This document shows positions 12,813-47,082 of a stretch of DNA of 51,293 bases, piece after piece. This DNA is from Macrostomum lignano (taxonomy: Eukaryota). The notes under the pieces were generated by a model. It saw nothing but the letters and a program-made list of their open reading frames with translations. It ran no database searches and was not told the origin of the DNA. Every line of letters starts with the position of its first letter. Positions within the stretch are counted from its first letter, which is position 1. Made by a program: the position numbers and the translations under genes. Where the stretch lies: contig NIVC01004299.1 of assembly GCA_002269645.1 (NCBI GenBank), positions 1 to 51,293 on the forward strand, given 5' to 3'.

Positions 12813-13579
12813 ATGCATAGCAATTATCCTCTTATTGTGCTGCTCTGTGTAGCTCTTATTGTTGGACCAGCGACAGCTCGAGTCATGTTCTCCATAGCCA
12901 AAATGAGGAGCGTCTCAGCTCCGGTTGCCATGGAGACTCTGACTGGCATCGGCAGGCTGAAATGCGCCGAGCTGTGCAGTCTGAGATCTGACTGCTATGG
13001 CTTCAGTTGGCTGATGCAGGGTCTGTGCAGATTTTTCAACTTCAATGCTTTTCACAATGACGCCTGGATGAGCTTGGATGCCTGGGATGTTTACACCGTC
13101 AGGAAGGGTGAGTATGAAGCACGTTATAAATATATGTAGATTTTTTCAGCACCTTAATCTTGAAGTTATGCTACTTAATTTGTATTCTAGACGCAGTGAA
13201 GCTGAGCTTCATCAGCTGCAACCAGAGCTCGGTCCAGATGAGTGGAGTTTGCGAGAGAGCATTCGATGGTGATACGAACCAGGATTACTCTCATGGATCC
13301 TGCACCCACACGATTGGCGGTGAGGTAGGCTGGTGGGAGGCCCACCTGTCCCGACCTGCCCTCGTCTCGCACGTCACCATCTACAACCGGGCGGGCTACA
13401 GCTACCGAATGAGAAAACTTTCCCTGCAGGTGGACGGCTCTGAGTGCTACCGAGTGAACAGGACGACGGACTTCTCTGTGGCCACCTTCCAGTGCAACGC
13501 CTTCGGCAGTAAATTTGGAATAGTCGGCTTGCAGGAAAATTCAATCAACATCTGCGAAGTGGAGATCTTTGGATTTTGA
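12813..13579 (+). CDS. Secreted PAN/apple + F-type lectin protein, paralog B (exons 12813-13107 and 13191-13579; 227 aa)
   Basis: Signal peptide MHSNYPLIVLLCVALIVGPATA and PAN-like CAELCSLRSDCYGFSW...CRFF. 83-nt phase-1 intron (GTGAGT...TTCTAG) at the same position as in paralog A; both first exons are 295 nt. F-type lectin fold motifs CERAFDG, CTHT, GWW, IYNR and CEVEIF. AATAAA near 13600. Confidence 0.88.
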
Positions 13580-14976
13580 GTGGTTTTTAATGCAAAAAAA
13601 TAAATATCGGTTTAAGCAATATTTACGCAAACGTTGACCAAATGACGTACGTAAGCAGAACCTGAATGTATGCTAAAAATTGGGCCGGTTTATTTCTAGT
13701 CCGCATACGGGCGTATGTGTAACGAGTCCGGTATATTTAATATTACTAGCGAAGAGAGAGTATTAGCAACGTATATCAATGGTTCAGCAGATACGTCTGT
13801 CAGTCCTGGACGATTTACTATACTCGGAGCATAAGAAATCTTACTGTCTTAGTATGAATGCGTACACTGGTGATCGGCTCTGATTATAATTATTGTATCT
13901 CACGTACATGCTAGGTTGATCTACGTCCCAGGCTGCCACACGCTTACAGAAAAAGACTAGAACTTACATGTTAAAATTATGAGTCGCATTTCTTGGAAAC
14001 GGAAACCAAATTAACAAAATACGTAATATTAAACCCTAGAATAAATTACGCACGTAATCTAAACAGCTAAGGATTTGAATAAAGTTAAAATACACCATGT
14101 TAATAAACTAGATTTGAATTACAGAATTTCCAAACCGTTACATATGGTCGAAGTTTCTTTAAAGTATAAAATATCCTGCTATAGAAAACTCTTTCTCTAA
14201 TCCTACTTTTTGTGTTAATTTTATTTATATTAAAAATTTATTTTATCACCTATATTTGTTGCAATTTATGTATCAAAACCTGATAATTCGAAAAATTATA
14301 ATTTTTTTCTCCTAAATATTGAACTCCTTAAATTACGCTCGTAAATTCGCTTTTTTTGTCGTTGCTTTATTGTCGTGAATCACAGTTACCATTCAATTTT
14401 TTTATTTTGTTTTATTGCCTTACTTAGTAGTCCTATATAGCTACTTTTACAAAAAGCTTATCGTGTAGTGTTTGACTGCAATTTTTAGCTTAGTTTCTTA
14501 GAATGGTGGCGAGTTTTGATGGTTAAAATGTTTAACTTTTGTTCGTAGATAATAAATCTTTTTCTTTAGAAAGATTCTTCACTTTGAATTTTAAAATCTT
14601 AATAACTTTCCTAGCGAGTTCACGGGGCACCTTAACTATGAAGAGGAACCGGCATCAGAATAAGCCCATGCACTTACGTGTTTTATAAGAATAATCATTG
14701 TTTGCTCCAAAATTTGAAATGCAATTGCTAAGTAGCTAGTAAAATAATCTTAAAAAGAAGTCAAGAAATTGTTATCTAATTGTGTTTTAATACGATAACC
14801 GGTATATGCACTGAATAATCACGCAGTTTCGTAAGTACTTGGCTTAAGAGAGCTGGCACGAACTTGCATAACTATCAGAAGCTAGCGCGCAATTTCATGA
14901 AGGCTTAGAAAACATACGAGTAAACGAGAAATGACGAAAACACAGCGATTAAAGTACATGCATCCATAAAATGTGT

Positions 14977-16449: not shown

Positions 16450-17700
16450 TTGAGGAATTTCATATCGTTTACCAAAACCGCCTGTTCGATCTTTCGCAGA
16501 GAAGCTTTCCGGCTAACTTCAGAAGGACGTCTTTCAGCTGCAAAGTTGTGCCTTAAACACCTTTGCAGAGACAGTGATTCTTGCCAGTTTAATAAATTGG
16601 CTCAAGCAGCAGCTAGCAATGGTCACTTGGACGTTGCTAAATATTTCTCCTCACAGATCAGTGACCGATCGCTCAAAGATGGATGCGTTGACGATATCGC
16701 AACCGCAGCATCTTGTAAAGGTCGCCAGAATGACGTTAAATTCTTCGCCTCCCAGATTAGCGACCAATCGCTGAAAGAAAAATGCTACTCAAAATATGCT
16801 CAAGAAGCAGCTATCAAAGGTCATCTTGATGTCGTTGAATATTTTGCTTCACGGATCAGTAAGCCATCGGTCAGAGCTCAATGCCTCTCAGAATCTGCAA
16901 AAGCAGCAGCAAGGAGAAATCTCTTTGATGTCGCTAGATATTTTGTCACACAGATTAGTGACGAATCGCTCAAAGATGAATGCCTCTTGCATTGTGCAAC
17001 GGTAGCACCTGGATGATTTTGAATTCTTCGCCTCTCATACTCGTATCAGTGACCGATTGCTCAAAAATAAAAGCTTCATCGAATGTGCAGAAGAAGCGGC
17101 TATGGAGTGTCACCAGAATGATGCTAAATATTTCATTTCAAAGATCAGTGACCACTCGCTTAAAAAGCAATATCTATCCGCTTGTGCAAAAGCAGCCGCT
17201 GCTTAGGTCACTTGGATATGGCAAAACGTTTCGCCCTACAGCTCAGCGGTCAGTCGATTAAAGATCGATGTCTCACAGCTTTTGCAATGGAATCAGCTTG
17301 GAGAGATCCCGTTGATGATGCTAAATACTTTGCTTCAGAGATTAATGACCAATCGCTTAAAGAAAAATGTCACCTATGTTGTGCAAGTAGCAAGAAGAGA
17401 TATGCTAGGTGTCTCTGGATATTTCTTCTCACAGATCGGTGACCAATCGCACAAAGGTCAATTAGACATGGCTAAATATTTCGATTCGCAGATCAGTGAC
17501 CAATCGATAAAGGTCCTATGCTCATCAGAATGTGCCAAGAAGCAGTTTGGAAAGATCACTTGAATGTCTCTAAATATTTTGTCTCACAGACCAGTGACCG
17601 ATCGCTTAAAGACGGATGCCTCACAGATTGTGCAAAAGCAGCTTCATTGAGAGATCATTTGGATGCTGTGAAATATTTCGCCTCCCAAATCTTGTGACCA
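16450..17700 (+). pseudogene. Degenerate array of about 12 divergent 33-aa ankyrin-like repeats (AAxxGHLDVAKYFASQISDQSLKEKC)
   Basis: A 99-nt unit recurs at about 16620, 16720, 16820, 16920, 17010, 17110, 17205, 17305, 17405, 17455, 17555 and 17655. The frame is broken by several frameshifts, stops and a partial-unit deletion near 17430. Confidence 0.75.
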
Positions 17701-21295: not shown

Positions 21296-22486
21296 TCAGT
21301 CTATTTCAATAAGAGTTGGAATTCGAACCTTTCCATCGGAACCTCTGCGCCGAGGGACACAATGATGCTGAGCGCAAATCGGAAACTTCTTCTTGAAACA
21401 AAAGTCTCTTAGCTTAAACTTCTTTCCCTGTCCTCGAAAAGTTCTCTGATCGAAAGTACACAGAGCGTACCTGAGCTCAAAGTATTTGTCAGCGTGCACA
21501 AGATACACGGTTCCAAATTTGAGTCCTTTTAATATTTCTTTAAACGTGCCGCTGCACTGGCAGTTTAGGCCTGACCATGAATCTGGAGGCTTTTTAACGA
21601 CTTTTTGTACCGGGTTTTCTTTGCACGCGTCGCAGTTGCAGTTGTGCAGCAGTATGTTTTCTCCGTCATTCTGGTTTAAAAAGTTCAAGGGCTTGCTTAG
21701 TTGCCCCTGAATTACCAGACGATGATCTTCTGAGCAGCAGAAGTGCTTTGGAGGTTCAAAATTGACACTCTTCACCGAAATTCCAATCTTCTTGCACTCG
21801 GGTTCGGCTCCAGGATTGACATTTACCTCCTTCTCTATCCGCAGGTCGTACTTTTCTGTTTCACGACAATACACGCAGCCAGGCACACGGAAATCCGGGT
21901 GAAAGCTGACGTGAGTTAAAGCCAAGTACTCTCCGAAAATAGACTCTTTAATATCATTCTTTTCACTGTGATGGATCATCTCGAGCAAGCACGGGATCTC
22001 TGTCGCTTTACTTGAATTTCGAAAAACTTCGAAAGTGAAGTTGGCATCTTTGAGCAGCAGGTAAAGGGATGCAGCTGCCAATCCTTCTGAGTAGCTGTCA
22101 GGGACATGAACCACTGTAGCGTCAGACAGCTTCCATTGGTTTGGGTTGTCTGGAAGTTGATCAGACAGTCTGTCAGCTTCTTGATTGGATCTTTCACGAA
22201 CCACAGGCCTTTCACGAACCACCTCGAATGGTGTTCCTGTAACACATACGCTCTTTCTGAATATAGTGTAGGCTTTTTTGTAAACGGTAAGGAATTTGGG
22301 ATCACCATACTGTCCTGAAGACTCGCTGGCAGTTAAAACAGTTAGTAAGGCAGCAAGTTCGTTGCCGCAAGGCAGATCAGCAAAGTTTATTTCGCACAAT
22401 TCCTTTAGCAGGTCTTCGTTGTAGCGCTCCGCTATGGTTTGATTGGAAGGGTTAATTACATTTGCATTTGGTGCTGCATTGGCCAT
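21296..22486 (-). CDS. Uncharacterised intronless 396-aa protein, Cys/His-rich C-terminal half
   Basis: Uninterrupted ORF in otherwise AT-rich DNA with ATAATGG start context. A splice-acceptor-like TTTACCAG lies about 10 nt upstream (cis- or trans-splicing). Motifs CVYC, CNCDAC, CQC and CAQHHC; no family recognised. Confidence 0.75.
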   Translation of the reverse strand: MANAAPNANVINPSNQTIAERYNEDLLKELCEINFADLPCGNELAALLTVLTASESSGQYGDPKFLTVYKKAYTIFRKSVCVTGTPFEVVRERPVVRERSNQEADRLSDQLPDNPNQWKLSDATVVHVPDSYSEGLAAASLYLLLKDANFTFEVFRNSSKATEIPCLLEMIHHSEKNDIKESIFGEYLALTHVSFHPDFRVPGCVYCRETEKYDLRIEKEVNVNPGAEPECKKIGISVKSVNFEPPKHFCCSEDHRLVIQGQLSKPLNFLNQNDGENILLHNCNCDACKENPVQKVVKKPPDSWSGLNCQCSGTFKEILKGLKFGTVYLVHADKYFELRYALCTFDQRTFRGQGKKFKLRDFCFKKKFPICAQHHCVPRRRGSDGKVRIPTLIEID

Positions 22487-23368
22487 TATACGAGCCTGGT
22501 AAACTGATTTTAGACTTAACAGAGCGTAAGATCGACTCTAAAAGTTAATTTTATAAGGTTGCTTGATTGCAACAAAAATGTTTAAGGAATGAAAAAGTAT
22601 AGCCAAAAAGGTAAATAGCGCTTACTTATGCTTGTCGATCAAAAAAAGATGAAATCAGCAGTTATAGTAGTTATGCAGTTAGGTAGTCAGATAATTGCAA
22701 CTAATTAACCGTAAGTGTTTTTGATCAAAAGAACTTTTGGATATCTGCTCACACTCACTATTAAAATGTATATTCTCCTAAAATATGAGGCAAATGTGAA
22801 GAGAGAATTTCTGTTTAAACCTGCAATAATTTCTGTTTTATATTCAATCAACCACTGTTTAAACAAACTGCAAGGGCTGCTAAATTTCATTCAACACTGC
22901 ACATTCATGCGAAAAGTCTGTCGGGAATTCAGTTGCGGCTGGGGGCAGAAACATATTGTATTTCAACCCCACGCCCATTTGCTAACCCTGGAAAGGGTGT
23001 ACGCATGTATTGGCGTTGGTACTGTACTAGCAAATAGTCCAGCGTATTCTTCCCCTTGGTCTCTCCAATTCCTCCCAGTCTGCACCGCCTCCAGTTTTCT
23101 TTAATGTACGCACATTGATCACGCCATTTTTGCATCCTACCCTGACGCACATTTGCACTTAAGTTATACATGTGGCTGAACTAAATAGAATGAAGTTCAT
23201 GCCCACTGAGACATTACTGCCTTCCACCAGCCTGCCTGTCTGGATCTCTGTCATACAAGCGTATCAGCAGAGAGGCAGAAGAAATAGCACCCCTTATTTA
23301 CACTCTAAAACTCTTAAGCACACCACAGAATTGCAGCAGCAAAAGAGCTTCACTGCTTGCAGAAAGGC

Positions 23369-26300
23369 ATGACTTTGCTTGGCTTGTACGATGGAATTCT
23401 AAACAAGTTGCTTAGTACCTGTGCAATCGCACGCAATGCTGAGCAGCCCCTGCCTCAGACCGCGGGAGACTCTCCATTGCTGAAGTTCTGTCTAGAAGAG
23501 ACAGAAAAATCGAGCTGTCAACTCATCATTCTGCGGGCTGAAGCTGCACACCAGGTCGATGCTGGCTCAGAGCTTTGCTGGACTTCGCCGCATCACCAGG
23601 TTGCTATGAGAGTCTCAAGGCCAATCAAAGACTTGGCAATGGATTCTGGAAACCAGCAAACTCAGCTCATTCTGTACGACTTGTGCCAATTCGCTTTCAA
23701 AAACTTGAAGGAGCTCCAAAAACCTGAACTGAAAATACTCACTAATGAAAAATTGATAATGAGCTTGTTCGACTTCAAGAGACAGCCGGACCATCAGCGA
23801 GTGGAAAATTTCCTTGTGAGTGCCTACCTGTTTATGCACCTTATCCGAGTGCCAGGCGACAGACTTATCACTGTATTTGAAGAGGCAGATAACAGGCTTA
23901 GCATCCAGATTGGTGATGGACCGCGAAGTTCGCTTCGAAAGTTGACTTTCGACTGCAGCACCAAAACAGAGGAGTCTTTCGAGAAACAATTTCACGAAAC
24001 CCTGAGTGAGGGTGGCTCTTCATTGTACATCTGCTTATTCTTTAACGAACTGAAGACTTGCAGCTGGTACCTCAATGAAAAGGGCAAGGACAAGCAGCAC
24101 GATAGGCTCCCGAATCATGACACAAGCTTGATCCAGTTCGAAGGCGATTGCTCGAAGCTGAATATCTCAGTGACAGCCTTCGATAGCGTAGAAGATAAAT
24201 ACAGCAGCTTCCAGATGGAGCTGAGTGCGGATGCAGCATTCTCACCCGATCGGTTTGGAGACGATGAGCTGCTGTCGACTGTAGTTGGTCTCGTTCGAAA
24301 GGTCGTGATGGAGCAGAAGCCGGCCAACCTCTGCCTCGTCTGCCTTACCGTTCCGTGTCGGACCGCCATTAAGTGGTTGGACATCGCTTCCGGCAGGTGA
24401 GTCGCTTATTTTTTTAATTGGGTGGAGCAGGGCTTATTGGATATTTGCTTTTTTACTGTATATACCAAAGAGGAACTGCAAAACTGATTTTAAAATTTTT
24501 GGTCACATTTATTTCACCATGGCTAGTTACTTATTGTGGTTATAAATTGTGATATTTGTAGTCGTATACGAGCGTACAGTGTGTGGGAGTCTTGCTCACT
24601 TTCATCGATATTTTAATGATGCCAATGAGTGTCAAAGCTGTCAATATTTTTCCGTATAAACCGTATTACTTCATTCCGTTGCTGAGTTTACGAAGTAAAA
24701 TGACAGCTAAATATTACAAATTTGAATGTGATTTTCAAAAACGCAAGTGCTTTTATATTTTTCAGGGAGATATCATGTTGTACAGAAGAAGGCCAAACAG
24801 TCCCATGTTCTGATGACGCTCAGTTATCGGTAGGTTTTCCAATATCCATGTGTTATATCGATTTATGTACTTACTACTTATGCCCCATCCGATTCCAACA
24901 ATCAATGAAAATGATCATTTTTCTCTATAAGAAAATTAGTGCCTAGTGTTGATTAATACTAAAAACGAGTAACTGTCTTTGTAATTAAATAAAAAAGTTT
25001 CTTCCAATTTTTCCAGATTTTTCATTCAGCAGCAGCTAGTGGAGATGTTGCAGTGCTGAGGCAGAGACTGGAAGGCAACCGACTATTGGTTAGTGCTCAG
25101 CAGCAGGAGTTTCCACGTCGCACCGCTCTACTCTGTGCTGCAGCAGCTGCTCCAGAAGACTTTTCTCAGGGTCAACAATCGCACACTGAATGTGCGAGCC
25201 TACTCATCAACAAAGGAGCTGATGTTGGAGACTGTGACTCTCGCGGACACTCGGTGCTGCACTGTGCGGTTCTATCTGAAAATGAAGAATTGGTTGAGTT
25301 TCTGCTGAAAAATTCAACTGCAGATCCAAACAGCAGAGACGAGGATGGTCTGACACCCCTGCAGCTTGCGGTAGAGCAGGAGAACGTTGCCATGGCAGAC
25401 CTATTTCTGGAAAGTGGGGTGGATGTCTGTCTGAATCCCGACGGAACCATTGTTGAACTTGTCCAAGCTCTCGACTCCGAAAACTTTGAGCTCGTGAGAA
25501 CACTCCTAGATCATTATCCGGAAGCAATGTCCGACGACCAGTTTCATAAGTACTACTGGCAAGCGTGGAAACTGGATGCGACTCAAATCTACAGTCTTCT
25601 TTTGATGTATGTATGCTCATAGGTTTTTCCAAAAAGTGATTTTTTCCAATCTAATCGAACTGTAAATTTTTATTGGTCACCTTTTTAGATCAAAATATGG
25701 TCTTTCCGACGAAGCGGTTCAGGTAATTTCCCCAGTTTTTCTAAGCACTGATTATATATGAAACACTTTAACTTAAATGTTCTTAATGTTTATTTGCATA
25801 TGACTGTATACTTGTACATTCGAATATTCATGATTGAGAAAAGTTATTGGGTTTGTTGATCAAAGCAGCAATGAGATTTCAAACATCGTAAATCATTCCA
25901 CTTTTTCGCTAAAAACCCATATTTAGGAAGCAACTCTACTCGGACAGCTTGCATCTCAAGGCGATGTCGAGCAGCTCAAATTGAAGCTCAGCATCCACAA
26001 CTGCAACCTCCGAGACTGGGACTGCAGAACTCCGCTCATGTGGTCAGCCATCGCTAGTTGCGACCCCACAGAGGGACATGCAGACTGTGCTCAGCTGCTG
26101 CTCAGTCTGAGAGCGAACCCCAACGCTGCCGATCTTGACGGCAACTCGCCATTGCACTTGGCTGCGGCCTCCAACAATGTGGAAGTGGCGGCGCTGCTGC
26201 TGCTGCACGGAGCCGACGAGAAAGCGAGAAACCGGAAAGGCGCCACTCCGGCTGAGGTAGCCAAGCAAAGCGGCCAGCCGGATGTGCAACTCTTCCTGGA

Positions 26301-29300
26301 GACCGCTGAGGAGCTGGAACGGTAAGAGTACTTTTATAGAAAATGCTACGAGCGTAATAGTTATGGTTGCATACTAAAGTTACAATGGAGCGAAACCGAA
26401 GGTTCAAAATGGAGATTGCTCGTGAGAGGGGCTTCACATTCAGTGGGTCGCCTGAGCAGTTGGGGTTCTATATAGAAATTAAGCTAATAATAATAATAAT
26501 AATGTTTTGAAATTTACGCACAAAAATCCCTGCAAACGGAGAGGAGGAGCAGGCCAAGCTCAGAACGTACATCTGGCCAGTAGGGCACGAACAGGCTCCT
26601 CCCTGAGCACTAATGTCGGTTTCCTCAGGTGCAAACACAGTGCAGACCGTTGTCGCTTCAATATCTTAAACTCTGCAGTCTCAAATCTCCGGTCCAACAA
26701 GCCACCTATTTGAATTTGCGGCTTTTTCCCACTCTTTACTCGACTTTCTCTTGCTTATTGCCAGCTTTCTCGCAGTCATCTGCTTCTGCCTACCTCTACC
26801 TCCGCTTTTCGATATTTTAAATAAACGTTCGAAGTTTGATGAAGCTGCACTGACTGGGCGCTTTGCCTAGAAATACTTTTGCAGTTTCGGGGAGTTTCCA
26901 ACTCAATTAAGTTATTTGTACTTCATAAGAATCCAGTTTCAACTGCTCTAAGAACCCTGGCTTTCCCTCCTTCTACTATTGTAGAAGCTCAGAGGCCCGG
27001 CAGGCAGCCGCACACCGCTTGGATTCGGGCCTCCATCGGTGAGTCTGACCGGTTTGGCTTTCACTGCCGCATTGCGCTTTCCAACAGGCTGGCAGCTTGG
27101 GGCAGAAATTGCAGAAAGAATCAGAAGGGTTGAGATTGGGTTTGACTGAGTGTTACACTCGCAGCTCTCCTGCTTGCTCTGTCCATCCAACTCTAGGCTC
27201 TCAGACGACTCCCAGCAAGACAGGCGCCTGAGCGAGGAGCTGCATCGACTGCTCAGCGAGGCGGGATTCACCGAGAAGAGCGCAAAGTGTCAACAGAGAC
27301 TGACTGACTGGCTGCAAGAAGTCGCTCGAGTCCTCACGCATGATAATAGGTGGATGACGGGCAGCTACGCAGAGGGCTGGGCCAACAGTCTGGTGCAAGT
27401 GAACGGCAAGACAGCTGCAGACTCGGACATTGACTGGACTGTGCTGGTTGCTGGGCGGCAGTTCCATTTGGAGGGGTGCTGTGAAGGAAGATTTGGTTCC
27501 TGCAGAGACACCACTCGGCTGCAGGTCACGGAGGGTCACGTAAAGGTGGCAGTGGGAGCAGGTGAGTGAGGCTGTGTTCAGCATCAGAGTGCAACTGGAA
27601 GCCCAATAACAATCGGCTCAATTTTAAAATCGTAACCGATTGACGCCCAGTCTCCAAAAGCTACGTGTAAATAGTAAAGGAATTTCTCGTTTTAAATTTT
27701 TGCTTTATCCCCACATCATAAATTCCATAACATGCCCCTGCAAGCATTTCAGCGATTATTTTGCTTTATAGCTTTTGACATTCTAAATGAGAATTTGGCC
27801 AAGCTAGCTGAGACCAATGATCATATACACAAGATGGGCCACTCAATAACCACTCATGTGGCCATAGAAGCTAATGTAAAAAATTGCAACTGCGGGAAAA
27901 TCGACTACTGAACTCAATTCCGTCAGTAGTCTCTGCAGTGAATGCATCATTCTCAGTTTGATTGAGAAGATTTTTATTCAATTTGTGAGAAGTTCTATCA
28001 AATTATGTCCCTAAGCTACTGAATTCAAACTTATAAGCAACCCATGTTGGCTTTTTCGCACAAGTGACGAAAAACAGCGGTCGCACTTTCCCTATTACCG
28101 CCATACAAAGTGGCCTATCTAGGGAATATTCGATCTATGGGTGAGACCAGAGAATATCCAGTATAAACAGAATGCCAATAGGGGGGTCTAAAGTAAAGCC
28201 AGTTTTTGTTCCTTCCAGGACTCTACTTTTTGGCCATAGAAACTCCATGAGTTTTAGCAGGCGCATTAAAAATGTTTGCTACTAGCTTGCTTTTAAGACT
28301 AAATTTTGCTAATTGTATATTGTTTTGTTAGTAGGCTTTTTACCATTTACCAGGCAAATTCTCATCAAGCGGGGCTGCGGGGCATGGATGAAGGTATAGA
28401 AAGGATCGCTCATCTAAAAGCGAGTCTAATGGCCAAGACTTCCTAAAAATTGGGATATTCCCCCCCATGAATTTCATTGGCTGCTGGAATTTAATAATAG
28501 TCCACCCTAAGTTCTTAATGGCTAAAGCTTGTGCGCGGGGGAAAATAAAGCAGTTATAGATGTCTAACGTTAATTCACTTAATAGTGACTTTGGAATTTC
28601 CCCGGCGTACTTAAGCTTCGGCCAGTAATAAGAGACTATTATTAAACATCTTTATTAAGCCTCGGGACCATTAAATGCAGCCTCGGATATTCTAACCACA
28701 GAATGTGAATTAAACGGCCTTTATTATACCTCTTAACATTTTTTGGACATAAGTGAAGTTAATTTAGTCATTAGCCAGCTCAGTCCTAGAAAAGTGAGTT
28801 TGATTTAGTCAGCAGTCGGGGTTTACCATAGACTATAGTTAAGAAATGAAATCGATTTAACTAAATAAAACTAATTAGAATAAATTAACTTCACTTGTCC
28901 AAAATAATTGTTGAAAGGTATATTGCGTAATCATTGATTACAGTAGTAGCACTGACACAGGAGCTGAATTAGTTCAATCAACGTACGCGTTCAATTATTT
29001 TCAAACCAACCCAGTTTTTTAAGCTCACCACAAAGCGACTGTTCGCTTACTGCGCTTTGCAGGCAGCCAACCTGCAGTGACAGCCATGGCGTGCGGTGTG
29101 CGGCCTGCACAGGAAACGTGCCATGCGATCCAGTGCTGCAGCAGTTTCTGTGAGGATAGGGTTAAAAAACTGGTTGATAACAGTTATACTGCAGTTTACC
29201 TGGTTCGGGCGACCAGACCGAGCTCGACCAACGAGCTCAGAGTGAGCTTCAGCTTCCAAGAAAAACACATCATGAGACGGCTGAGCACAGTCCAGGGCCA

Positions 29301-30516
29301 GCTGTTCACACTCATCAAGTTCATCTTCAAGAGATACTTGCCGCTCACTCTGGACACACCTGGACTCAAGACCTATCATGCAAAGACTCTGCTCTTCACA
29401 ATGCTGAAAAAGCATGGCACAGATCCTAAGACTGAAGTTTGGCAGCCCCACAATCTGATCGCTCTGCTCAAGGAGTCTCTCGACTTGATGCTGAGCTTCA
29501 TCGACTCAAGCAGCTCGCCCGATGAGTGCATGCCGCACTTCTTCATGCCCGACGCTCCGCTCTACTTCAAGTACGCTGGAATCGGCGGCGACTTCGACAA
29601 CACGAAGGCGAGGGTTCGAGACCGACTTTGTGAACTGAGAAGCGACATCGGCGGAGTGGTCAAGCAGCTGAGGAGACTCGTGAGCCCTCCGCAGTCAGAG
29701 AAGTTCTATTTTCACCCGTTCACTCTGCTGCCTCTGACAGCACCGCCTGCTGTCACGGAGATCAGGAAAGGACTTTATGGCAAAGAGGAGATTTACTACA
29801 AGTTCGCATACGTGTACAGTGTGGTGCACCAGTGTGTGAGCGAGCTGCAGTCCGAATCGATCGACAGAGACACCCTGATGAGGCAGCTCAGTCTCCTGCA
29901 TGAGCTGCAGTGGTGCAAGTCCGCCGTCCTGTGCATGACCGCCATGGCGCATTTGAAGTTCGGAGAATCTGAGGAGGCTGAGAGACTCGCGATGGAGCTA
30001 CAGAGACATCAGGTTGAGTTAGGGTTAAAGCCACAGGATATTCCAAGAGATCGATATGGCCCAACTAAACTGCCAGAAGACTCAGACTGGGCGTGGAGGT
30101 TCTGCCTCCCCTGTGACTCTCCGCCTCACTTCCCGTTCCTTCCCGAGTTCACACAATCTCTATTCACAGCCAGACTTTCGCAGCCTCTCTCCTCTCACCT
30201 GTACGTGAACTTCCGCTGCCTGAGCTGGAGTCTCCAAGCTGAGCTGCTCCGCAATCGCGCACCTGCAATCGCATTCGATCATTGGATTGAACAGCTGCTT
30301 GAAGACCCGGACTTGGAGGAGCTGCTCACTCTGGCTCACTACAGCGACTGCTGCGAGCACGTGGAGCTCAGCCTGCAGCAGATGGAGATGATCAAGAAAG
30401 AGAGACGCGTCGCCATGGAGACGCAGGACGAGGAGAAGATCAGCTCGGTCAGACAGAAGCTGAAGAGACTTAATGATGCAGTAGCAGAAGTCCATCGGTC
30501 GGAAAAGGAAGGCTGA
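23369..30516 (+). CDS. Multidomain cGAS-like receptor (cGLR/Mab-21 nucleotidyltransferase) with about 9 ankyrin repeats and an unrecognised N-terminal domain; predicted 1317 aa
   Basis: Exons 23369-24396, 24766-24829, 25017-25610, 25927-26321, 26985-27038, 27197-27561 and 29063-30516 are all GT-AG and phase-compatible (2,0,0,2,2,1), total 3954 nt. Ankyrin repeats in exons 3-4. NTase GSYAEG...DSDID in exon 6. Mab-21 motifs VYLV, ELRVSFSFQEK, LIKFIFK, LKTYHAKTLLF and PHFF in exon 7. The Mab-21 identity is firmer than the junction to the ankyrin exons. Confidence 0.75.
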
Positions 30517-30989
30517 GTCAGACTGACTGTCTGGTGCGGTGTTCGATGCTGACACAATTTTCATTTACTTTGGTTTTGTTCAATCAAACTGTTTATTCTG
30601 CTGCATGCTGGCTTGATGAGGGTTCTGCGTGTTCTGCCAATTTCTGTCTAATTTAGCAACTTAAATGCTGCTTTGGTTTGTCTGCTTTTCAGGAAATGAG
30701 CACATCGAGAGCCACTCAGGAGTAGCCCTTCTGCTATTAACTGCAAATTGGTACACTTGTTCTGCAATTCAATTCACACACTGCATGCTAAATCGTTTTT
30801 TCCGTTCAAACTGCGCATCTGCTTTGATTTGGACTTTTCTCTGAGATTTTGTTCTGTATTCTTCAATACTTTTTAAGAGGTTTTTTAGGCTAAATGTACA
30901 GGCAGTAATTGTCAGCATGAACCTTGAAAGGTCTTAGGGTCAGCTGGGTCGGTTCGAAGCAGGAAAAGCTTGCTTCAGGAAAAAGCAAG

Positions 30990-32345: not shown

Positions 32346-32925
32346 AAAAAAATGTGCAAACCCCTTTGCATATTTAGTTAATATCGGGTTTATTTCAATT
32401 AATTCAGACAGTATTAGTAGTGGCATGCATGGACTAAATATAAGCGATATAATGAGCATGATTAAGCAATAATAATAACTGAGTAATGGTAGCATAGCAT
32501 AGTATAGAACATAGTATGATTATATAGTAATATACAGTATAGGTAATAACAATGGACATAGCATACTATCAGCAAAAGTAATAAAACAGTACGAGTACAT
32601 GATTAGTGGAAGTAAACGACAATAATTAAGCCATACAATATTAGTTTGAGCAATAGTATGTGAGCACTTGAACAGTAATAATTGAGCATAATGGGATTAA
32701 TGAAATAGGCAATGACCATATAGGTTTTCTTCCTGAATATAATCGATATGTAAATATATATGTAAGGCAAGAAGCGGTGCAATGATTTGAAGAAAAGAAA
32801 AATAAATGGCACTATGGCACTGTGTAGAAAAATGCATACAACATCAAAAAAAAATTAAAAAAATTAAAGCTGTTTAATTGTGTAGAAAAGGTTAATAAAG
32901 CTGAAATGTTAATCCTTGTCTATTA

Positions 32926-33762
32926 TTAAAGTTGCCCTATCGGTCGGCAAGTTGGCGCGCGCTGAGAGCACTGGTAAAGGAGGCCAGTCGCGGGGGTTCG
33001 CCTGTCCTTTGGGTCGAATAATTCGACCATGGCCCGGAGATGCTCACTTACTTGGAAGGGCGACAATGGTCCCCTAGCCCTATCCTCAGCATATTGGAGG
33101 GCGTACGTGCAGGCGACTTCCATACACTGGACTTTCTGCTCAGCGGTGGCCTGGGCCAGAAATCGAGTACACTCTGGCGGCACCGCCGGGTCGTAGTGGC
33201 CAGTGCTGCCTGTTCTTAGCAGCCACTTTTTGAGCGCCTTGGTACTCTTCCTGAAACTTCGTGGGCTTGCTCCTGGCTGCTCGTTGCTTTCAGCAAGGTC
33301 TTGTGGCTGCGGTGTGTCGGCCCTGAAGAAGATAGCTACATCGACCGGAGTCTCATTAGTCGTCGGCCTCGCCTCCGGCGCTTCCTTAGGTTCCGGCACT
33401 TCTTGCGGTTCCGATACTTCTGCTGGGGCGTCGTTCTTCGGGCTGAGCTCTTCCTCGAGTTCAGGTAATTCTACTCCCAGTAGAGCTGCCATGAATTCCT
33501 CCTGTTCTCGCCGCACCTCCTCATCATGCCTTCTCGTTGCCTCCTCCAGGTCTACTCCATTCAGATCTACAACCAACTCTCCAGCCTCTTTATCTTCGTC
33601 CACTTCCTCTCGCTGCCGAACTTCTATGGGCTTCTCAGTTGCTTCTCTTGCTCGTACCGATCGTATTTGTGGCTGTTCGTTTTCATCGGGGCTACTTCTT
33701 CTTCTTTTCTTTCCCGAGTAAATTGTCTTGACTGGGTATACCCGCTCCGGGGCGTCAGCCAT
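32926..33762 (-). CDS. Retrotransposon ORF3, 278 aa, acidic, with basic KKRRR motif; not env-like
   Basis: Intact ORF between pol and the 3' LTR in element sense, preceded by the acceptor-like CCTACCTGCTCTTCCAG (ends 33776). No signal peptide or transmembrane segment is visible. Confidence 0.7.
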   Translation of the reverse strand: MADAPERVYPVKTIYSGKKRRRSSPDENEQPQIRSVRAREATEKPIEVRQREEVDEDKEAGELVVDLNGVDLEEATRRHDEEVRREQEEFMAALLGVELPELEEELSPKNDAPAEVSEPQEVPEPKEAPEARPTTNETPVDVAIFFRADTPQPQDLAESNEQPGASPRSFRKSTKALKKWLLRTGSTGHYDPAVPPECTRFLAQATAEQKVQCMEVACTYALQYAEDRARGPLSPFQVSEHLRAMVELFDPKDRRTPATGLLYQCSQRAPTCRPIGQL

Positions 33763-33766
33763 AATG

Positions 33767-36700
33767 CTATTCGAGCTGGAAGAGCAGGTAGGGGTTAAAC
33801 AACTCCGTTACCTTTTGCACATAGCTCTTCCGGCCTGGGTCTATCGCTAATCTACTCGGTTCCCGTCTATCTCTAACTGGTCTAGTTTCGATTGCTGGCT
33901 GCTCATTATTATTTTGCACTGGTAGATTATCTTCTTGTACTGGCATAACCTGCACTGGCATATCCTGCACTGGTACTGGAACATTATTCTGACTCTGCAC
34001 TGGCACAAACTGCACTTCATCTTCATGTTCACTCTCACTGTCGGCTGCTTCGTACATCGGATTAAGCGGTACATTTTCTCGAAGTTTCGGTCGCCTGGCA
34101 CAACTGCTTTCTGGCTTTTCTTCCTCACTAACGTAATCGGCTGTTGGTACGGGTAGTAAATTATCCCTATGCATGACTAATTCCTCTTTTCTAGCCTTAG
34201 TACTTTTTTTAATAATCTAATCCTGTAAACTACTTCTGATAACTGTTCTATGACCTCGTAGACTGCTCTTCTCTTCCTGTGGAACTTGTTGGCTTCTGTC
34301 TGTGTGATGACTGGGTTGTTAATGAAAACTAAGCTCCCTATAGGTAAGTCTGGTTGTTTAGGTTTGTTAGAATAGTGCTGCTCACGCTTACGTTGTATTA
34401 ATGTGAGCCGCTGTTTGGCGAGTTCTTGCCCCTCTTGCAGGTGAGTCAAGTGCTCTTGAACGTAAGCAGGCAGATCGGCGAACGCCTTTGGCTGCTGGAA
34501 CACATTGTCACTCGGCATCCGGGCCTCTCTTCCAAACACAAGATAATGCGGACTGAAACCTGTGGCTGTATGCGTGCTGGTGCGCAATGCGGTTATACAA
34601 CCGGGCAAAGACATCCCAGTTCGCATGTTCTTTCTCGAGCAAACAGGTAAGAATTGACTTAATTTGTTTGTTTAAATTTTCTACTAGCCCATTGCTTTGT
34701 GGATGATAGCTTGTTGTCCTAGTGTGCCTAATCCCATAGAGGTCTAAAAACTTTCTAAATGCTCTCCCTGTAAATTGTGTTCCCTGATCTGTGTGAATCC
34801 ACTGAGGTATTCCAAAGTCGGCGAAAACTCGCTCCTGCAGAATTTTAATTACTGTCTTAGCCTTCTGATTTTTAATTGCAAACGCAAATGGAAATTTGCT
34901 AGTGCTGTCAATAACTGACAAGACATATTTGTTACCAGATTTGCTAGTCTGATTGATCGAACCTATCAAATCAATGTGAAGGCGTGAGAATGGCTCGACA
35001 ATAGGAAAATTCTGCACGGGTGCCTTGCATCGCTTTCTTGATTTACTATCTAAACAAGATTTGCACTTGGCGACGTACTTTTCGACTGCTGTAGCTAATC
35101 CTACTCTCCAAAATCTTTCCTTAACTCGCTGATAAGTTTTGTCTCTTCCTAAATGACCTGCTAACGGTGAATCGTGGAATTCGTGAAAAACTTCACCATC
35201 TAAAGACTTGGGCAACACCACTTTAGATTCGGTCCGCCCTAAATTTAAGTCTATTCTAAGAACACCGTCTTCTATCCTGAAGAGTTCAAAATAACCTAGC
35301 AGATTTCTAATCTCGTGAGACAATTCTAGTCTTTCTTGAAAATTCGGTTTCGGCAAGTCAGATTCAATCAGATTCCTGACATAGCTTAGTGCGGGGTCAG
35401 CTAGCTGAGCTGCGACCAAATTTTCGCGACGCACAGGGCTACGAAGGTAATCACTCAGCAGTGCATTGCAAACAAGCGGGTGCCTTTCCTTAGGCTCCTG
35501 TTCTTGCCTTTTGCTTAGCAACCTGCTACTAAAACTCTGAGTATTGTGTCGGTTCGGCGCCATATTCTGCGGCGAACAGCATGACGTAACTCCACTGTGT
35601 AGACTACAGGTTTCGGCTTGCGCGGAATTGCCTGAGCTCACAGTAACAGCTGATGCTGGGTCTGTGTTCACAGTTGCCCTACAGCTAAGCGACCTGGCAT
35701 ATGGGGATGACTCATCCTGTTGAGGATCCGGGATCCTGGATAGAGCATCAGCATTCACATGCTTAGGGCCACTTCTATGCTCAATCTCAAAATCAAACTC
35801 ACTAAGTCTCTCGATCCAACGACCTAAAATGCCTGTCTGTTCGGTCTGGCGAAGCAACCAGGTTAGGGCATTGTGATCAGTGCGCACCTTAAAACGTTTC
35901 CCTACGAGGTAAAACCTGAAGTACTTCAGCGAGTCAACAATCGCTAGAAGCTCCTTCCTCGTAATCGGATATCTACTTTCTGACTGCCTCATTTTCCGAC
36001 TATAATACGCGATCGGTCTCTCAACTTCGTCGCTCTGTACTTGATTTAAGACCGCCCCAATTCTGACATCTGATGCATCAGTGTCTAACACAAAGTAAAC
36101 TTGGGGGTCTGTATTAAACTCTGGGTAAGCAAGCACTTCTTCGGAACACATCCGTTCCTTTAACAACTCGAAGCATTCATCATGAATCCTGGTCCATTTG
36201 TCCTGGATACATTTGATGTTCTTCTTCGTTAGCTCACAGAGCGGTGCTGCTACCTCGGCAAAATCTCTAACGAATTTTCGATAATAATTACAGAGTCCGA
36301 GAAAACTTCGAAGCTCTGTCACAGATTTCGGTTTCGGCCAGTTCCTAATCGCTTCTAACTTTGACGCATCTCTCTTAATTCCTGCTTTGCCTATGACGTG
36401 TCCTAGATATTGTAGTTCTGATTTGAAAAGGTGACATTTCTTCGCTTTTAGTTTCATATTAGCTTGGATTAGTCTTTTGAGCACTTCTTTCAGGTGTTCT
36501 AAGTGAGATTCAAAGTCTGTACTATAAACTATTACATCGTCTAAGTAAGCTATGGCGAACTTCTGTGCAATGTCCTTAAGAACTAAGTTCATGCACCTTT
36601 GAAAAGTTCCTGGAGCTCCTTGCAATCCCATTGGCAAAACTTCGTACTCAAACGAGCCTCGATGTAAAGTTGGAAAACTAGTTTTGCACTTATCTTCTTC

Positions 36701-38191
36701 CCTAAGAGCTATCTGATAATATCCTGAGAATAGATCTAACGTAGAAAATTGACTGGCTCCATGGAGACACGAGAATGTTTCATTAATATTAGTTATTGGA
36801 TACGGAAAGTACTCCGATTTGTTATTTAGTGCTCGATAATCGTTAACTAATCTCAGCGAACCATCCTTCTTAGGTACTATGACTAATGGAGTCGAGTACT
36901 GCGAGTAACTAGGCCTAATGATGCCTCTAGCCAACATGAGATCTAACTGTTCATCTACCTCTTTGATCCAATGAGGTGGAATCTTCCTAGCTGGTATCTG
37001 AACTGGGTTGTTGTCCTTCAAGATAATCTCATGCGTGACTAAGTGCGTTCTGCCTAAGTCTAACTTGTGTTGTGAGAAAGCTGCTGAATGTTCCTTGACG
37101 ACCTCGATCACCTTCTGTCTCTGCTCCTGAGTCAGTTCATTTCCTATGTCGATCTCACTAATCCAATCTTCTGACTTGTCTTGAACCTGTCTGATGTTTT
37201 CGCAAAACTGCGTGTTCTTATTCTGGCATAACTGCTCTTTCTCTGGTTGATCCTTAAGATAGTTTAATTCACTAGCTAAAAGCGGTTTAGCCATTCCTAC
37301 TAGTGCTGATGCTGGCACTCTAGCTTCCTGTGAGCTGGTGTTAATGACTTCTAGATAAGCTTCTCCTTGCCTTAGAGTTACTAAGCTTGGCACTACAGTT
37401 ACCTTCTCTGCTCTAGTCTTCAATCCTGATCTGAGTGGCTCAACAACTGATGGCACTCCGAAATTGGATTCACTACCTGTGGCTAACCTGACTTTGACTA
37501 ATCCTGAACTATTAGCTGGAACTGTCGTCTTTTCTGCAACATAGATTCTCTTAACCTGAGGCTTAGCTCTGGTAGAACGAAGTGGAATTCTGGCTCCCTG
37601 CTTCATAGTTAGCATTCCTGTCTCAAAGTCGATAGCATTACAATATTGTTGGACAAACGTCACGCCTATTACATTGTCTACTCCTGCGTCACATAAGAGA
37701 AACTCTATTTCTTCTTCAAAATCTCCGAATGTCGCCTTAATTACTACGGAACCTTTAATTGGAATCGGCTCTTCCGTGAATGACACGATTCTATTGTTCC
37801 ACTGCTTAATTAAGTGACTATTCTTGCCAGTGAACAGATGTTTCCAGGTTTCTCGTCCTAGAATGCTCCTATTGCTGCCAGTGTCTAATAGATAAACTAC
37901 CTCCTTATTTAGAATGCTGCCAGTAATATACGGATCGTAATTTTGCTTCTTAGTTGGTTCGCTTAAATTTTGTGGTTTAATTTGCTGCTTACTAGAACAA
38001 GGTTGTTGCTGTGGTGCGTGTGAAAAGTGCTGAGAATAAATGTTTGGTTGATTAAATGGTTGCGCATGCATATTCAATTCACTATTTACAGAAAAACTAT
38101 CGCTGCTATTTACAGGTTGCGAGGCTACAGACTGCTGACTGTCTACTTCTGGAAAGCGTTGCCCCCTACGCTTCCGGCTACTCCGTTTCCC
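33767..38191 (-). CDS. pol: Pol polyprotein (protease, RT, RNase H, integrase) with two apparent 1-nt deletions
   Basis: LLDTGS; LDLFSGYYQI and YLDDV; LDTDASD; HDSPLAGH..CKSC, IDLIG, TDQG and E. Frame changes at about 34610 (WDV/LPGCITALRT) and about 34205 (A-run, then KEELVMHRDNL) link ORFs 34508-38077, 34177-34626 and 33767-34174. Confidence 0.95.
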
Positions 38192-39153
38192 TGATTCTTA
38201 TTCTGGTACTGCTGCGGGAACTGCTGCTGCGGGAACTGCGGCGGCGGGTACTGCGGTTGGTACGGAATAAACTGTGGTGGTTGTGGAAACTGCTGCTGCG
38301 GAAACTGCGGCTGATTCTGCTGCTGCTGGCAATGCTTAGCTATGTGACCGCTTTTCCCACACTTGAAGCACTTTACTGGCTGCTTCTGACCTTGGCCCTG
38401 TTGCTGGCCTTGGTACGGCTTCTGCCTAGCCTTCTGCTCAGCACTCTGCTGGTGTCGAAGCAACTCCTGGAGCACCCTCTGCTGGCTTTCTAGTGTCTCA
38501 CCTTGCTTGCGGACTAACTCCCTCAAGCTACTCTCAGCCTCATCTCCTCCAGTTGCCTTGCACTGAGCTGGATCTCTCCCTCGGCGAGACATGGTATACG
38601 CCATTTCGATACGTCGCAAGACTCGACGTGTCTCTTGGAGTGTGTTCGCCTGTGCTAGCAGTAGCTTTTCCCTAGCCTCTGGGGTTATCCTAACACCTCT
38701 AATAAATTGTTCCACCACTTCTTCCTGTCTTTGATCGTTAGTTAGGTGAGGAAACGCCCTATAGGCTAACTCTGTCAGCTTCTCCGCATAGTCGTCAGTG
38801 CTCTCTGTCTTAGATTGGTATCTGCTACGGAATTCTTCCCTAGCTTCTTGAGCACTACCCGCATGCGTGAATCGTTCGATGAGCCTATCCTTGAATTCAG
38901 CATACGGTAGATTAGGATCTAAATTCAGCCTTGTCACAATAGCAAACGCTGATTGGACATCTAGATTAGATAGTAGTTCATTTTTCCAATCGGCTGCAGG
39001 TATCTCATCTGCGATACACCTTTGCTCAAAAGCCTGAATCCACACGTCAATATCTTGATTAGGCGTGTACTTTTGGATCCTAATGTGCTTTCTAATGTCT
39101 AGTCTGTCTCTAATTCCTTCAGCCAGAGCTTCTACTACGTCATTAGCGTCCAT
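38143..39153 (-). CDS. gag: Gag with CCHC zinc knuckle
   Basis: YTPNQDIDVWIQAFE, FRSRYQSKTESTDDY and CFKCGKSGHIAKHC, with a Q/P-rich tail. Confidence 0.95.
   Translation of the reverse strand: MDANDVVEALAEGIRDRLDIRKHIRIQKYTPNQDIDVWIQAFEQRCIADEIPAADWKNELLSNLDVQSAFAIVTRLNLDPNLPYAEFKDRLIERFTHAGSAQEAREEFRSRYQSKTESTDDYAEKLTELAYRAFPHLTNDQRQEEVVEQFIRGVRITPEAREKLLLAQANTLQETRRVLRRIEMAYTMSRRGRDPAQCKATGGDEAESSLRELVRKQGETLESQQRVLQELLRHQQSAEQKARQKPYQGQQQGQGQKQPVKCFKCGKSGHIAKHCQQQQNQPQFPQQQFPQPPQFIPYQPQYPPPQFPQQQFPQQYQNKNQGNGVAGSVGGNAFQK
38150..38191 (-). promoter_or_regulatory. -1 programmed ribosomal frameshift signal (gag-pol)
   Basis: Slippery heptamer G-GGA-AAC (38191-38185) in the gag frame, a 9-nt spacer, then stem GGAAGCGT/ACGCTTTCC. 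The -1 frame is open from there into the protease. Confidence 0.75.
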
Positions 39154-39546
39154 TAGATTTTCGAATTTACGAATTATCGCTTCTTATGATTAATTGATTT
39201 CAGTGAGACTGGGAGACTCCTGAGTCACTGATCTACCTAACTAGTTTAATTGGTTACTTCTAATTGTGAACAGAACTGCTAGACTGCGTGATCTCTTCAC
39301 TTTTATCTGGGTCAATTTCGCCCTTGCTGATAATTTTTGACACTATTAGCTACTAGAAGCGTTAATTCGATCTTAATCCGTTAATCCTAGGATTTAGGAT
39401 TATCGTATTAGTTTCAGTATTTTAGATTACCTTCTCTCCTGATTCTGACTTTTCGAAACGTTTTATTTTGCAGGTTATATATTTTACTAATTTTTAGTTT
39501 GCACCAGTCTTAACTTTTTGCGTTTCTCGGGTTTACTAATCCTCTA

Positions 39547-47017: not shown

Positions 47018-47082
<65 letters not shown>

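Follow-up and report, generated by a model that had tools for sequence, protein, structure and literature searches.

The window analysed here, the whole 51,293-nt stretch of the Macrostomum lignano contig NIVC01004299.1, carries a candidate gene on its forward strand between positions 23369 and 30516. We read this gene, with slightly better than even confidence, as encoding one chimeric protein of 1327 residues, in which an orphan N-terminal domain (N-domain) and ankyrin repeats would be followed by a cGAS-like receptor (cGLR) module. Its two halves are assigned to two gene families of the same animal. Exons 1-5 belong to family A, the M. lignano genes with an N-domain, two ankyrin blocks and a variable tail, while exons 6-8 are, by sequence comparison, a 5'-truncated copy of a gene of family B, the M. 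lignano ankyrin-cGLR genes. The locus is a family-A locus that acquired this truncated family-B copy, as its ankyrins and its neighbouring gene are of the family-A kind, homology to family B starts inside a family-B intron 1 and the ankyrin exon of family B is absent. A sequence-only reading of the same DNA had proposed a three-module protein of this layout. The open reading frame (ORF) and the modules proposed there were recovered, but the mixed origin of the protein from two families, with ankyrins that are not the usual ones of the cGLR family, had not been anticipated.

Joining of the candidate exons across introns that are all of the GT-AG type gives a stop-free coding sequence of 3984 nt (1327 aa), which runs from the ATG at 23369 to the TGA at 30514-30516. 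The joining requires eight exons (23369-24396, 24766-24829, 25017-25606, 25689-25722, 25927-26321, 26985-27038, 27197-27561 and 29063-30516) and not seven as claimed earlier. Otherwise, the earlier gene model holds well. The continuous ORF bears out canonical, phase-matched joining, the proposed junctions 26321/26985, 27038/27197 and 27561/29063 are the ones that work in it, and the donor at 26322 is indeed in phase 2. The catalytic candidates had also been placed correctly (GS at 27360-27365, DID at 27426-27434 and the Glu of ETCHAIQC at 29113-29115), and the cGLR exons have no usable start of their own, as was stated: in-frame stops are located upstream at 26926-26928 and 27147-27149, and the first in-frame Met, at 27354, is only two residues ahead of the GS. 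The predicted protein consists of the N-domain (aa 1-345), ankyrins (aa ~365-703), a linker, a cGAS-like nucleotidyltransferase (NTase), a Mab-21 C-lobe and a C-terminal extension of 240 aa, with the catalytic residues at GS 777-778, D799, D801 and E861. The predicted peptide across the exon 5-6 junction contains ...ETAEELERSSEARQ... and exon 6, at 54 nt, could also be skipped (26321/27197) without loss of the frame.

Exon 1 (23369-24396) lies in a frame that is open from 23318 to 24400, has its first Met at 23369 and encodes the orphan N-domain (aa 1-342). It is followed by a 64-nt micro-exon between the N-domain and the ankyrins (exon 2, 24766-24829, peptide REISCCTEEGQTVPCSDDAQLS), by the first ankyrin block (exon 3, 25017-25606, Pfam Ank_2/Ank_4), by a 34-nt micro-exon (exon 4, 25689-25722, peptide SKYGLSDEAVQ) and by the second ankyrin block (exon 5, 25927-26321, Pfam Ank), which ends in the phase-2 donor CG/GTAAGA (the slash marks the splice site). 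Both micro-exons have GT-AG borders and fit in phase. Exons 1-5, both micro-exons and their peptides included, agree to within 1-2 aa with two existing protein models of one cluster, P0042 (A0A1I8JJD2, 703 aa) and P0048 (A0A1I8JKD9, 704 aa). Identity is 100% to both models across aa 1-342 of exon 1, 99% to P0048 in exon 3 and 100% to both in exon 5, and the two models therefore represent this locus in allelic or homeologous copies. The family-A paralogs P0049 (BOX15_Mlig001598g12), P0045 and P0046 are 40-45% identical in exon 3 and 43-51% in exon 5 (40-51% for the two ankyrin exons together), and the similarity of both exons to family-B ankyrins is only generic. That the repeats are real ankyrins, as had been proposed, is confirmed by a Pfam scan, in which five stretches between aa ~370 and 700 match above cut-off (Ank_2, E 6.6e-34).

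The N-domain had been called unknown, which agrees with the lack of any match to it in Pfam, PDB profile and fold searches. Its AlphaFold2 (AF2) model, built from a five-sequence alignment, is unreliable, with a predicted local distance difference test score (pLDDT) of 46, and the Foldseek matches of this model (E >= 0.13) were discarded as meaningless. A word-indexed search with the N-domain returned nothing, the identical database protein included. An exhaustive HMMER search recovered six clusters, all from M. lignano. Besides P0042/P0048 these are P0043/P0049, P0044, P0045, P0046 and P0047, which consist either of the N-domain alone or of the N-domain, ankyrins and a variable tail. Four M. 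lignano paralogs share 26-35% identity with the N-domain, including the invariant motifs LFNE, RLPNH and VPCR, and conserved motifs are present across five paralogs. The features of family A, namely the N-domain with LFNE/RLPNH/VPCR, two ankyrin blocks and a phase-2 intron, are all present in the window. The suggestion that the N-domain is a fused effector, making the protein a self-contained sensor-synthase-effector, finds no support. In all five paralog clusters the N-domain lacks a Mab21 module.

The gene neighbourhood is of the family-A kind as well. An unannotated divergent ORF upstream of the family-A gene (21296-22486, reverse strand; 396 aa from its ATG, no Pfam match) has homologues of 26-27% identity that are located divergently upstream of family-A genes at two other loci, L002 (7533-8576) and L007 (8087-9097). 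The ORF and the family-A gene form a conserved head-to-head pair, and because the same divergent neighbour is present at L002 and L007 the window is identified as a family-A locus. In all, the window shares the N-domain, the two ankyrin blocks, the micro-exons, the phase-2 intron and the neighbouring gene with the family-A genes (A0A1I8JJD2/A0A1I8JKD9, BOX15_Mlig001598g12, P0045 and P0046).

The remaining three exons are related to family B. Homology to the locus L001 of the family-B gene P0001 (BOX15_Mlig000394g2, assembly GCA_002269645.1) begins at window position 26741, equivalent to L001 12050, inside intron 1 and 233 nt ahead of the linker exon. Comparison by blastn with L001 and L003-L006 shows that the family-B-derived DNA extends on the forward strand from 26741 to 30978, with the end placed at ~30930-30980. 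This segment of ~4.2 kb, introns included, begins ~420 nt beyond the end of exon 5 and is made up of a portion of intron 1, three exons with the two introns between them and the 3' untranslated region (3'UTR). Within it, exons 6-8 reproduce the exon structure and the intron phases of P0001, to which they are 85% identical. Exon 6 (26985-27038) is the 54-nt linker exon of the ankyrin-cGLR family (peptide SSEARQAAAHRLDSGLHR) and is homologous to P0001 exon 2 (L001 12283-12336), with the same frame and a phase-2 acceptor in both. Exon 7 (27197-27561), which encodes the N-terminal helices and the NTase N-lobe with the GS and the DID, is 79% identical in amino acid sequence to P0001 exon 3. Exon 8 (29063-30516) contains the rest of the NTase core with the third acidic residue (Glu, 29113-29115), the RVSFSFQEK motif from 29239, the Mab-21_C lobe (~29353-29562), the C-terminal extension of ~240 aa and the stop TGA; it is identical to P0001 exon 4 in 86% of amino acids and 89% of nucleotides.

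Hence the linker exon and the two cGLR exons are present with family-B boundaries and phases, but the family's own ankyrin exon and the CC repeats that precede the linker exon are not. In tblastn searches with P0001, P0006, P0008 and P0014, the family-B ankyrin exon (MAIEG...TGATALMLAADAGHHELI...) had no specific match in the window. Compared with the ankyrin-cGLR paralogs P0001 and P0006 (BOX15_Mlig016402g1, PAA68676.1; cloned by Li et al. 2023 in their cGLR screen), the window copy is 81-85% identical in amino acid sequence over the linker exon, NTase core, Mab-21 C-lobe and C-terminal extension. The GS, the DID, RVSFSFQEK, the exon structure, the phases and ankyrins directly upstream are common to all of them. 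However, the window copy follows the ankyrins and the N-domain of family A, has a Glu as third catalytic acid where the paralogs have an Asp, and has no annotated protein model. A search with the C-terminal half of the protein gave 41 matches, all from M. lignano and at best 85% identical, most of them annotated with Ank and Mab-21_C. The family has more than 30 copies, many of them represented by fragmentary models.

The sequence of the transferred exons bears signs of constraint. Exons 7-8 of the window were codon-aligned with four paralogous loci, and the substitutions on the window's own branch were obtained by the three-point method. The ratio of nonsynonymous (dN) to synonymous (dS) divergence is 0.52-0.65 in pairwise comparisons. 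On the own branch dN is ~0.05 and dS ~0.10, which gives an omega of 0.42-0.55 with a bootstrap 95% confidence interval of 0.28-0.79, and at most 0.2% of the replicates reach 1. Among 223 positions that are invariant in 12 paralogs only 9 are altered in the window, compared with ~45 expected under neutrality, a rough estimate from the branch dS. In simulations of neutral substitution at d = 0.10, 604 codons stay stop-free in just 0.14% of the runs. These measures of purifying selection, together with the stop-free state, argue that, during most of the time since it diverged, the cGLR module was being translated. Recent gene conversion was rejected as the main cause of the intact state, since identity to five paralog copies is uniform at 85-90% and has a common regional profile, and no identical run exceeds 106 nt.

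The two families meet in intron 5 (26322-26984), the 3' part of which is family-B-derived from 26741 onwards. As the family-A donor and the family-B acceptor are both in phase 2, the reading frame is kept at 26321/26985. In both family-A paralogs that were read, L002 and L007, a phase-2 donor ends the last ankyrin exon at the homologous place (within one codon). The donor is AG/GTGTGA in L002 and AG/GTGAGC in L007, as compared with CG/GTAAGA in the window, and the annotated proteins of both loci are spliced from it into tail exons that are unrelated to each other. Intron 1 of family B is likewise a phase-2 intron (GG/GTGAGT ... cag/AAGCCC in L001). The family-A paralogs run into short low-complexity or CC-repeat tails, whereas the sole in-frame exons downstream of exon 5 in the window are those of the cGLR; a family-A tail exon was sought in the window and nothing above noise was found.

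Several observations weigh against a single fused protein with an active synthase. P0042 and P0048 both end in ...ETAEELER, where the donor CG/GTAAGA is read as CGG TAA (26323-26325), and an AATAAA is present in intron 5 at 26820. No Mab21 module occurs in any of the six N-domain clusters of the exhaustive HMMER search, no database protein holds the Mab21 module of the window (the best match is 85% identical), and exact look-ups of the fused, 704-aa, Met-27354, exon-8 and exon-1 products and of P0042, P0048 and P0046 returned no locus, allele or transcript-derived contig. At L002, a frameshifted and internally deleted fragment of a Mab21 C-terminus (13123-13683; aa 998-1231 of our model, 30-67% identity) is located directly after the CC-repeat exon of the family-A gene P0045. 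It is a further case in which the two families lie side by side, here in a decayed state, and shows that such juxtapositions can be debris. The relocation could be recent on the window's branch, so that part of the constraint may predate the truncation. Introns of the window are only 69% identical to L001, a divergence that exceeds the dS of 0.16, and some homogenisation of exons among the paralogs is therefore possible. Finally, the third catalytic acid is a Glu in the window as against an Asp in the eight other sequences of our nine-sequence alignment (8/8) and in all 12 close paralogs (12/12).

Many of these points would be accounted for by the chief alternative, a complete family-A gene of 704 aa which ends at the TAA 26323-26325 and is polyadenylated in intron 5, followed by a cGLR relic that is not expressed. 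The existing models end exactly at this TAA, the AATAAA would serve the shorter transcript, no protein with both N-domain and Mab21 module was found in the database search, and a relic would fit both the decayed fragment at L002 and a family of more than 30 copies with many fragmentary models. The phase match would then be a coincidence, for which the prior chance is ~1 in 3. However, we consider this arrangement unlikely. A relic would have to stay free of stops and frameshifts over 624 codons, with an own-branch dN/dS of ~0.5 whose confidence interval excludes 1, with a roughly five-fold depletion of changes at invariant sites and with no sign of recent conversion tracts. Reading through a phase-2 GTRAGT donor always gives an in-frame TAA or TGA, as is also the case for the donor of P0001. 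Because the stop comes automatically with such a donor, the TAA that ends the 703/704-aa models says little about the true terminus, and two paralogs do use a donor at that position. The family-A gene would moreover be tailless, unlike its paralogs, and the AATAAA, which is not conserved at the P0001 locus, lies in AT-rich, intron-derived DNA. A short isoform of 704 aa that ends at the donor TAA, possibly using the AATAAA at 26820, may coexist with the fused product.

Constraint demands translation of the cGLR module but not its fusion to the family-A gene, and the module might be expressed separately, from an unrecognised 5' exon or promoter, by spliced-leader trans-splicing at the exon 6 or exon 7 acceptor, as the second gene of an operon with a start at Met 27354, or from a distant exon such as 16450-17016, a family-B-type CC-repeat ORF located ~10 kb upstream on the same strand. 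We regard this as decidedly improbable. In M. lignano the spliced leader has ATG as its last three letters (PMC8629364). At the acceptors of both exon 6 and exon 7 this ATG is out of frame, and it makes a TGA in the cGLR frame; a start supplied by the leader to a stand-alone cGLR was rejected for this reason. Initiation at Met 27354 would remove two N-terminal helices (module residues 3-47) that belong to the fold in the AlphaFold2 model and are conserved in every paralog. In the paralogs, without exception, these exons are internal ones behind ankyrin exons, no family-B-type ankyrin exon is present in the window, and a splice from 17 kb that bypasses both a complete gene and one on the minus strand would be far-fetched.

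In the fused protein that we favour, the C-terminal module is predicted to be a nucleotidyltransferase of the cGAS/Mab21 fold. The AF2 model of exons 7-8, with 22 paralogs in the alignment, has a pLDDT of 83.4 and a predicted template modelling (TM) score of 0.87 (pTM). Foldseek gave 83 PDB matches to it at E<=1e-3, and the best 50 of the 83 are all cGAS, MAB21L1 or Sp-cGLR1; the best match is 4k9b (E 1.2e-6, TM 0.52 on target). A PDB search with the single sequence of the module returned nothing relevant and a family profile was therefore needed. This profile, in trimmed form, matched mouse cGAS (E 5.6e-5), Sp-cGLR1 (3.4e-4) and MAB21L1 (0.075) over the segment ELRVSFSFQEK...CMPHFF, and it aligned ELRVSFSFQEK with WRLSFSHTEK of cGAS, the RLSFSxxEK region. 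In an hhalign comparison with the coral cGLRs in the supplement of Li et al., the family aligned over just 49 columns, in the VHLV...RVSFS region, with a probability of 17%, so that this profile alignment does not confirm the catalytic residues. The Pfam model Mab-21_C (PF20266) scored 25.3 bits on the isolated module against a gathering cut-off of 24.1, and 22.8 bits, just under the cut-off, in the scan of the full-length protein; nine of nine paralogs match it. The Pfam NTase-core model PF03281 gave no match at E<=1, and the N-lobe is recognised by its fold and motifs only. The Mab-21/cGLR NTase identity proposed in the sequence-only reading is upheld by this predicted fold, by the cGAS match of the family profile and by retention of the catalytic positions. 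A fourth module had been overlooked there, the conserved C-terminal extension of ~240 aa (DWAWRFCLPCD...YVNFRCLSWSL...) after the Mab21 lobe.

The GS (G55/S56 in module numbering) and the DID (D77/D79) are invariant in an alignment of nine sequences that includes the 32%-identical P0036 (A2), and invariant or nearly so in one of 22 sequences that includes the 39%-identical P0028 (A1). In P0028, present in A1 only, the first Asp of the DID is a Gly. The third position is conserved as an acid in A2. In the secondary structure of the AF2 model, two long N-terminal helices are followed by a strand (residues 51-54) that ends just before the GS and by another (79-91) that begins at D79, and a further strand comes directly after the third acidic residue. 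This predicted placement of GS, DID and third acid is the arrangement of Pol-beta NTases.

The fused protein may nevertheless be made with a Mab21 module that has no catalytic activity or does not synthesise a second messenger, so that it acts as a MAB21L1-like scaffold, a pure ankyrin adaptor. Such inactivity could be a property of the module independent of the fusion. The failure of PF03281 to match, an insertion of ~9 residues in the loop from GS to DxD relative to mollusc cGLRs, the Glu that replaces the family's Asp and the occurrence of MAB21L1 among the fold matches are consistent with it, and the five cloned M. lignano cGLRs are not discussed among the 15 active enzymes in the main text of Li et al. 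However, GS, DxD and the third acid are invariant or conservatively kept in paralogs down to 29% identity, which is unexpected for a dead scaffold. Li et al. attribute the in vitro inactivity of many cGLRs to a missing ligand (PMC9980059). Their Fig. 1 legend describes Mab21L1-type proteins as lacking the active-site residues. On balance, a dead or non-synthase module seems rather unlikely to us.

With vertebrate cGAS and Sp-cGLR1 (PDB 4k9b, 8gjy), the window module shares the bilobal Mab21/cGAS fold (Foldseek E 1e-6, TM ~0.52 on target) and the RLSFSxxEK segment, but sequence identity is only 12-19%, and the module differs in its GS-DxD loop insertion, in giving no evidence of a zinc thumb, in the extra 240-aa C-terminal extension and in its large N-terminal additions. 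MAB21L1 (PDB 5eom/5eog) has the same fold; however, Mab21L1/2/3 have no predicted functional active site (Li et al., Fig. 1 legend), whereas the window module keeps all catalytic positions. The NTase core, with an isoelectric point of 8.8, contrasts with an otherwise acidic protein, a weak hint at nucleic-acid binding.

In the reading that we favour, the locus is a young chimeric gene. A DNA copy of part of an ankyrin-cGLR gene, reaching from the middle of intron 1 to the 3'UTR, lies behind the last ankyrin exon of a gene of family A, which is restricted to Macrostomum. Splicing from 26321 to 26985 would then join the N-domain and ankyrins of family A to the cGLR module. By homology with other cGLRs, the NTase may be inactive until a ligand is bound and then make a nucleotide second messenger, and the ankyrin blocks would most likely serve in the recruitment of proteins or ligands. 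The stronger proposal, that the locus encodes a functional and recently exon-shuffled immune receptor, in which a cGLR has come under another ankyrin scaffold together with an orphan domain as a new sensing or output module in cis, appears to us very doubtful.

The ankyrin-cGLR architecture as such is already catalogued, and so is the M. lignano family. Fusions of ankyrins with cGLRs, in line with the repeat-carrying cGLRs referred to in the sequence-only reading, are documented by Li et al. (2023; PMC9980059), who found that 87% of cGLRs are single-domain proteins and that some carry ankyrin or tetratricopeptide (TPR) repeats. They list M. lignano proteins with Ank_2 domains in their Table S2 and cloned five members of the ankyrin-cGLR family, although Macrostomum is never mentioned in their main text, which reports 15 active enzymes and many cGLRs that are inactive in vitro for want of the right ligand. 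The cGLRs of the coral Stylophora pistillata that are fused to ankyrin and death domains, like the ANK/TPR-cGLR class (PMC9980059), resemble the window protein in combining a cGLR NTase with repeat-type interaction domains, a minority architecture. However, they come from an unrelated lineage and represent independent fusions, and none is reported with the N-domain of the window. According to the same study most platyhelminths have no cGLR except Mab21-like proteins. Macrostomum, with its large ankyrin-cGLR expansion, is an exception within the phylum.

What would be new, if true, are the chimeric origin and the extra orphan domain. If the exon 5-6 junction is used, receptors of this kind could diversify when the terminal intron of an unrelated repeat-protein gene captures a synthase cassette with compatible phases, and the locus would provide a handle on the orphan N-domain. 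A functional chimera would be a natural case of pattern-recognition receptors being rebuilt through exchange of the sensor cassettes attached to a conserved synthase of second messengers, in a phylum where cGLR signalling is reportedly lost for the most part. With an unused junction, the locus would be just another fragmentary paralog of a repetitive gene family. M. lignano is a laboratory model for which RNA interference and transgenesis are available.

Some further features were observed in and around the family-B genes. The 54-nt linker exon is read in all three frames by existing M. lignano models (SPEARQAAAH in P0001, AQRPGRHPLIAW in P0002 and PRGPAGSRSPLG in P0015), and models of the ankyrin-cGLR family are therefore unreliable around this exon. 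Intron 7 (27562-29062) is 1.5 kb long in the window and ~560 nt in L001; the extra ~940 nt match none of the loci retrieved and may stem from an insertion. The ORF 16450-17016 consists of 'CCIKAA..G..E.VKFL'-type repeats, which also form the N-termini of the family-B proteins P0006, P0008 and P0014 and the C-terminus of the family-A protein P0045. Tandem Mab21 modules are present at L006 (33385-37648), with exon-8 equivalents at 34236-35657 and 36281-37648, and the P0002 model holds two cGLR modules, which resembles the multi-cGLR fusions mentioned by Li et al.

Elsewhere in the window, a giant ankyrin-repeat ORF of 1338 aa (Ank_2, E 1.5e-165) is followed by a protein-kinase-domain ORF at 4568-5377; together they probably constitute one ankyrin-kinase gene (192-5377, forward strand), and an ankyrin gene occupies the corresponding upstream place at L002. 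Downstream of the candidate gene, a Ty3/gypsy-type long terminal repeat retrotransposon occupies ~32900-39200 on the reverse strand, with a pol ORF at 34508-38077 (reverse transcriptase, RNase H and integrase) and a gag ORF at 38143-39153 (Retrotrans_gag and zf-CCHC). A degenerate, purine-rich (GA)n / GAGAAGAGAGGAGA microsatellite of ~1.2 kb at 46823-48041 is the cause of a GC skew of 0.63, and two minus-strand ORFs of 448 and 511 aa within it were dismissed as artefacts of the repeat. The segment 43514-43981 is 86% identical, in inverted orientation, to L007 430-880, which is near another family-A locus, and is probably a dispersed repeat.

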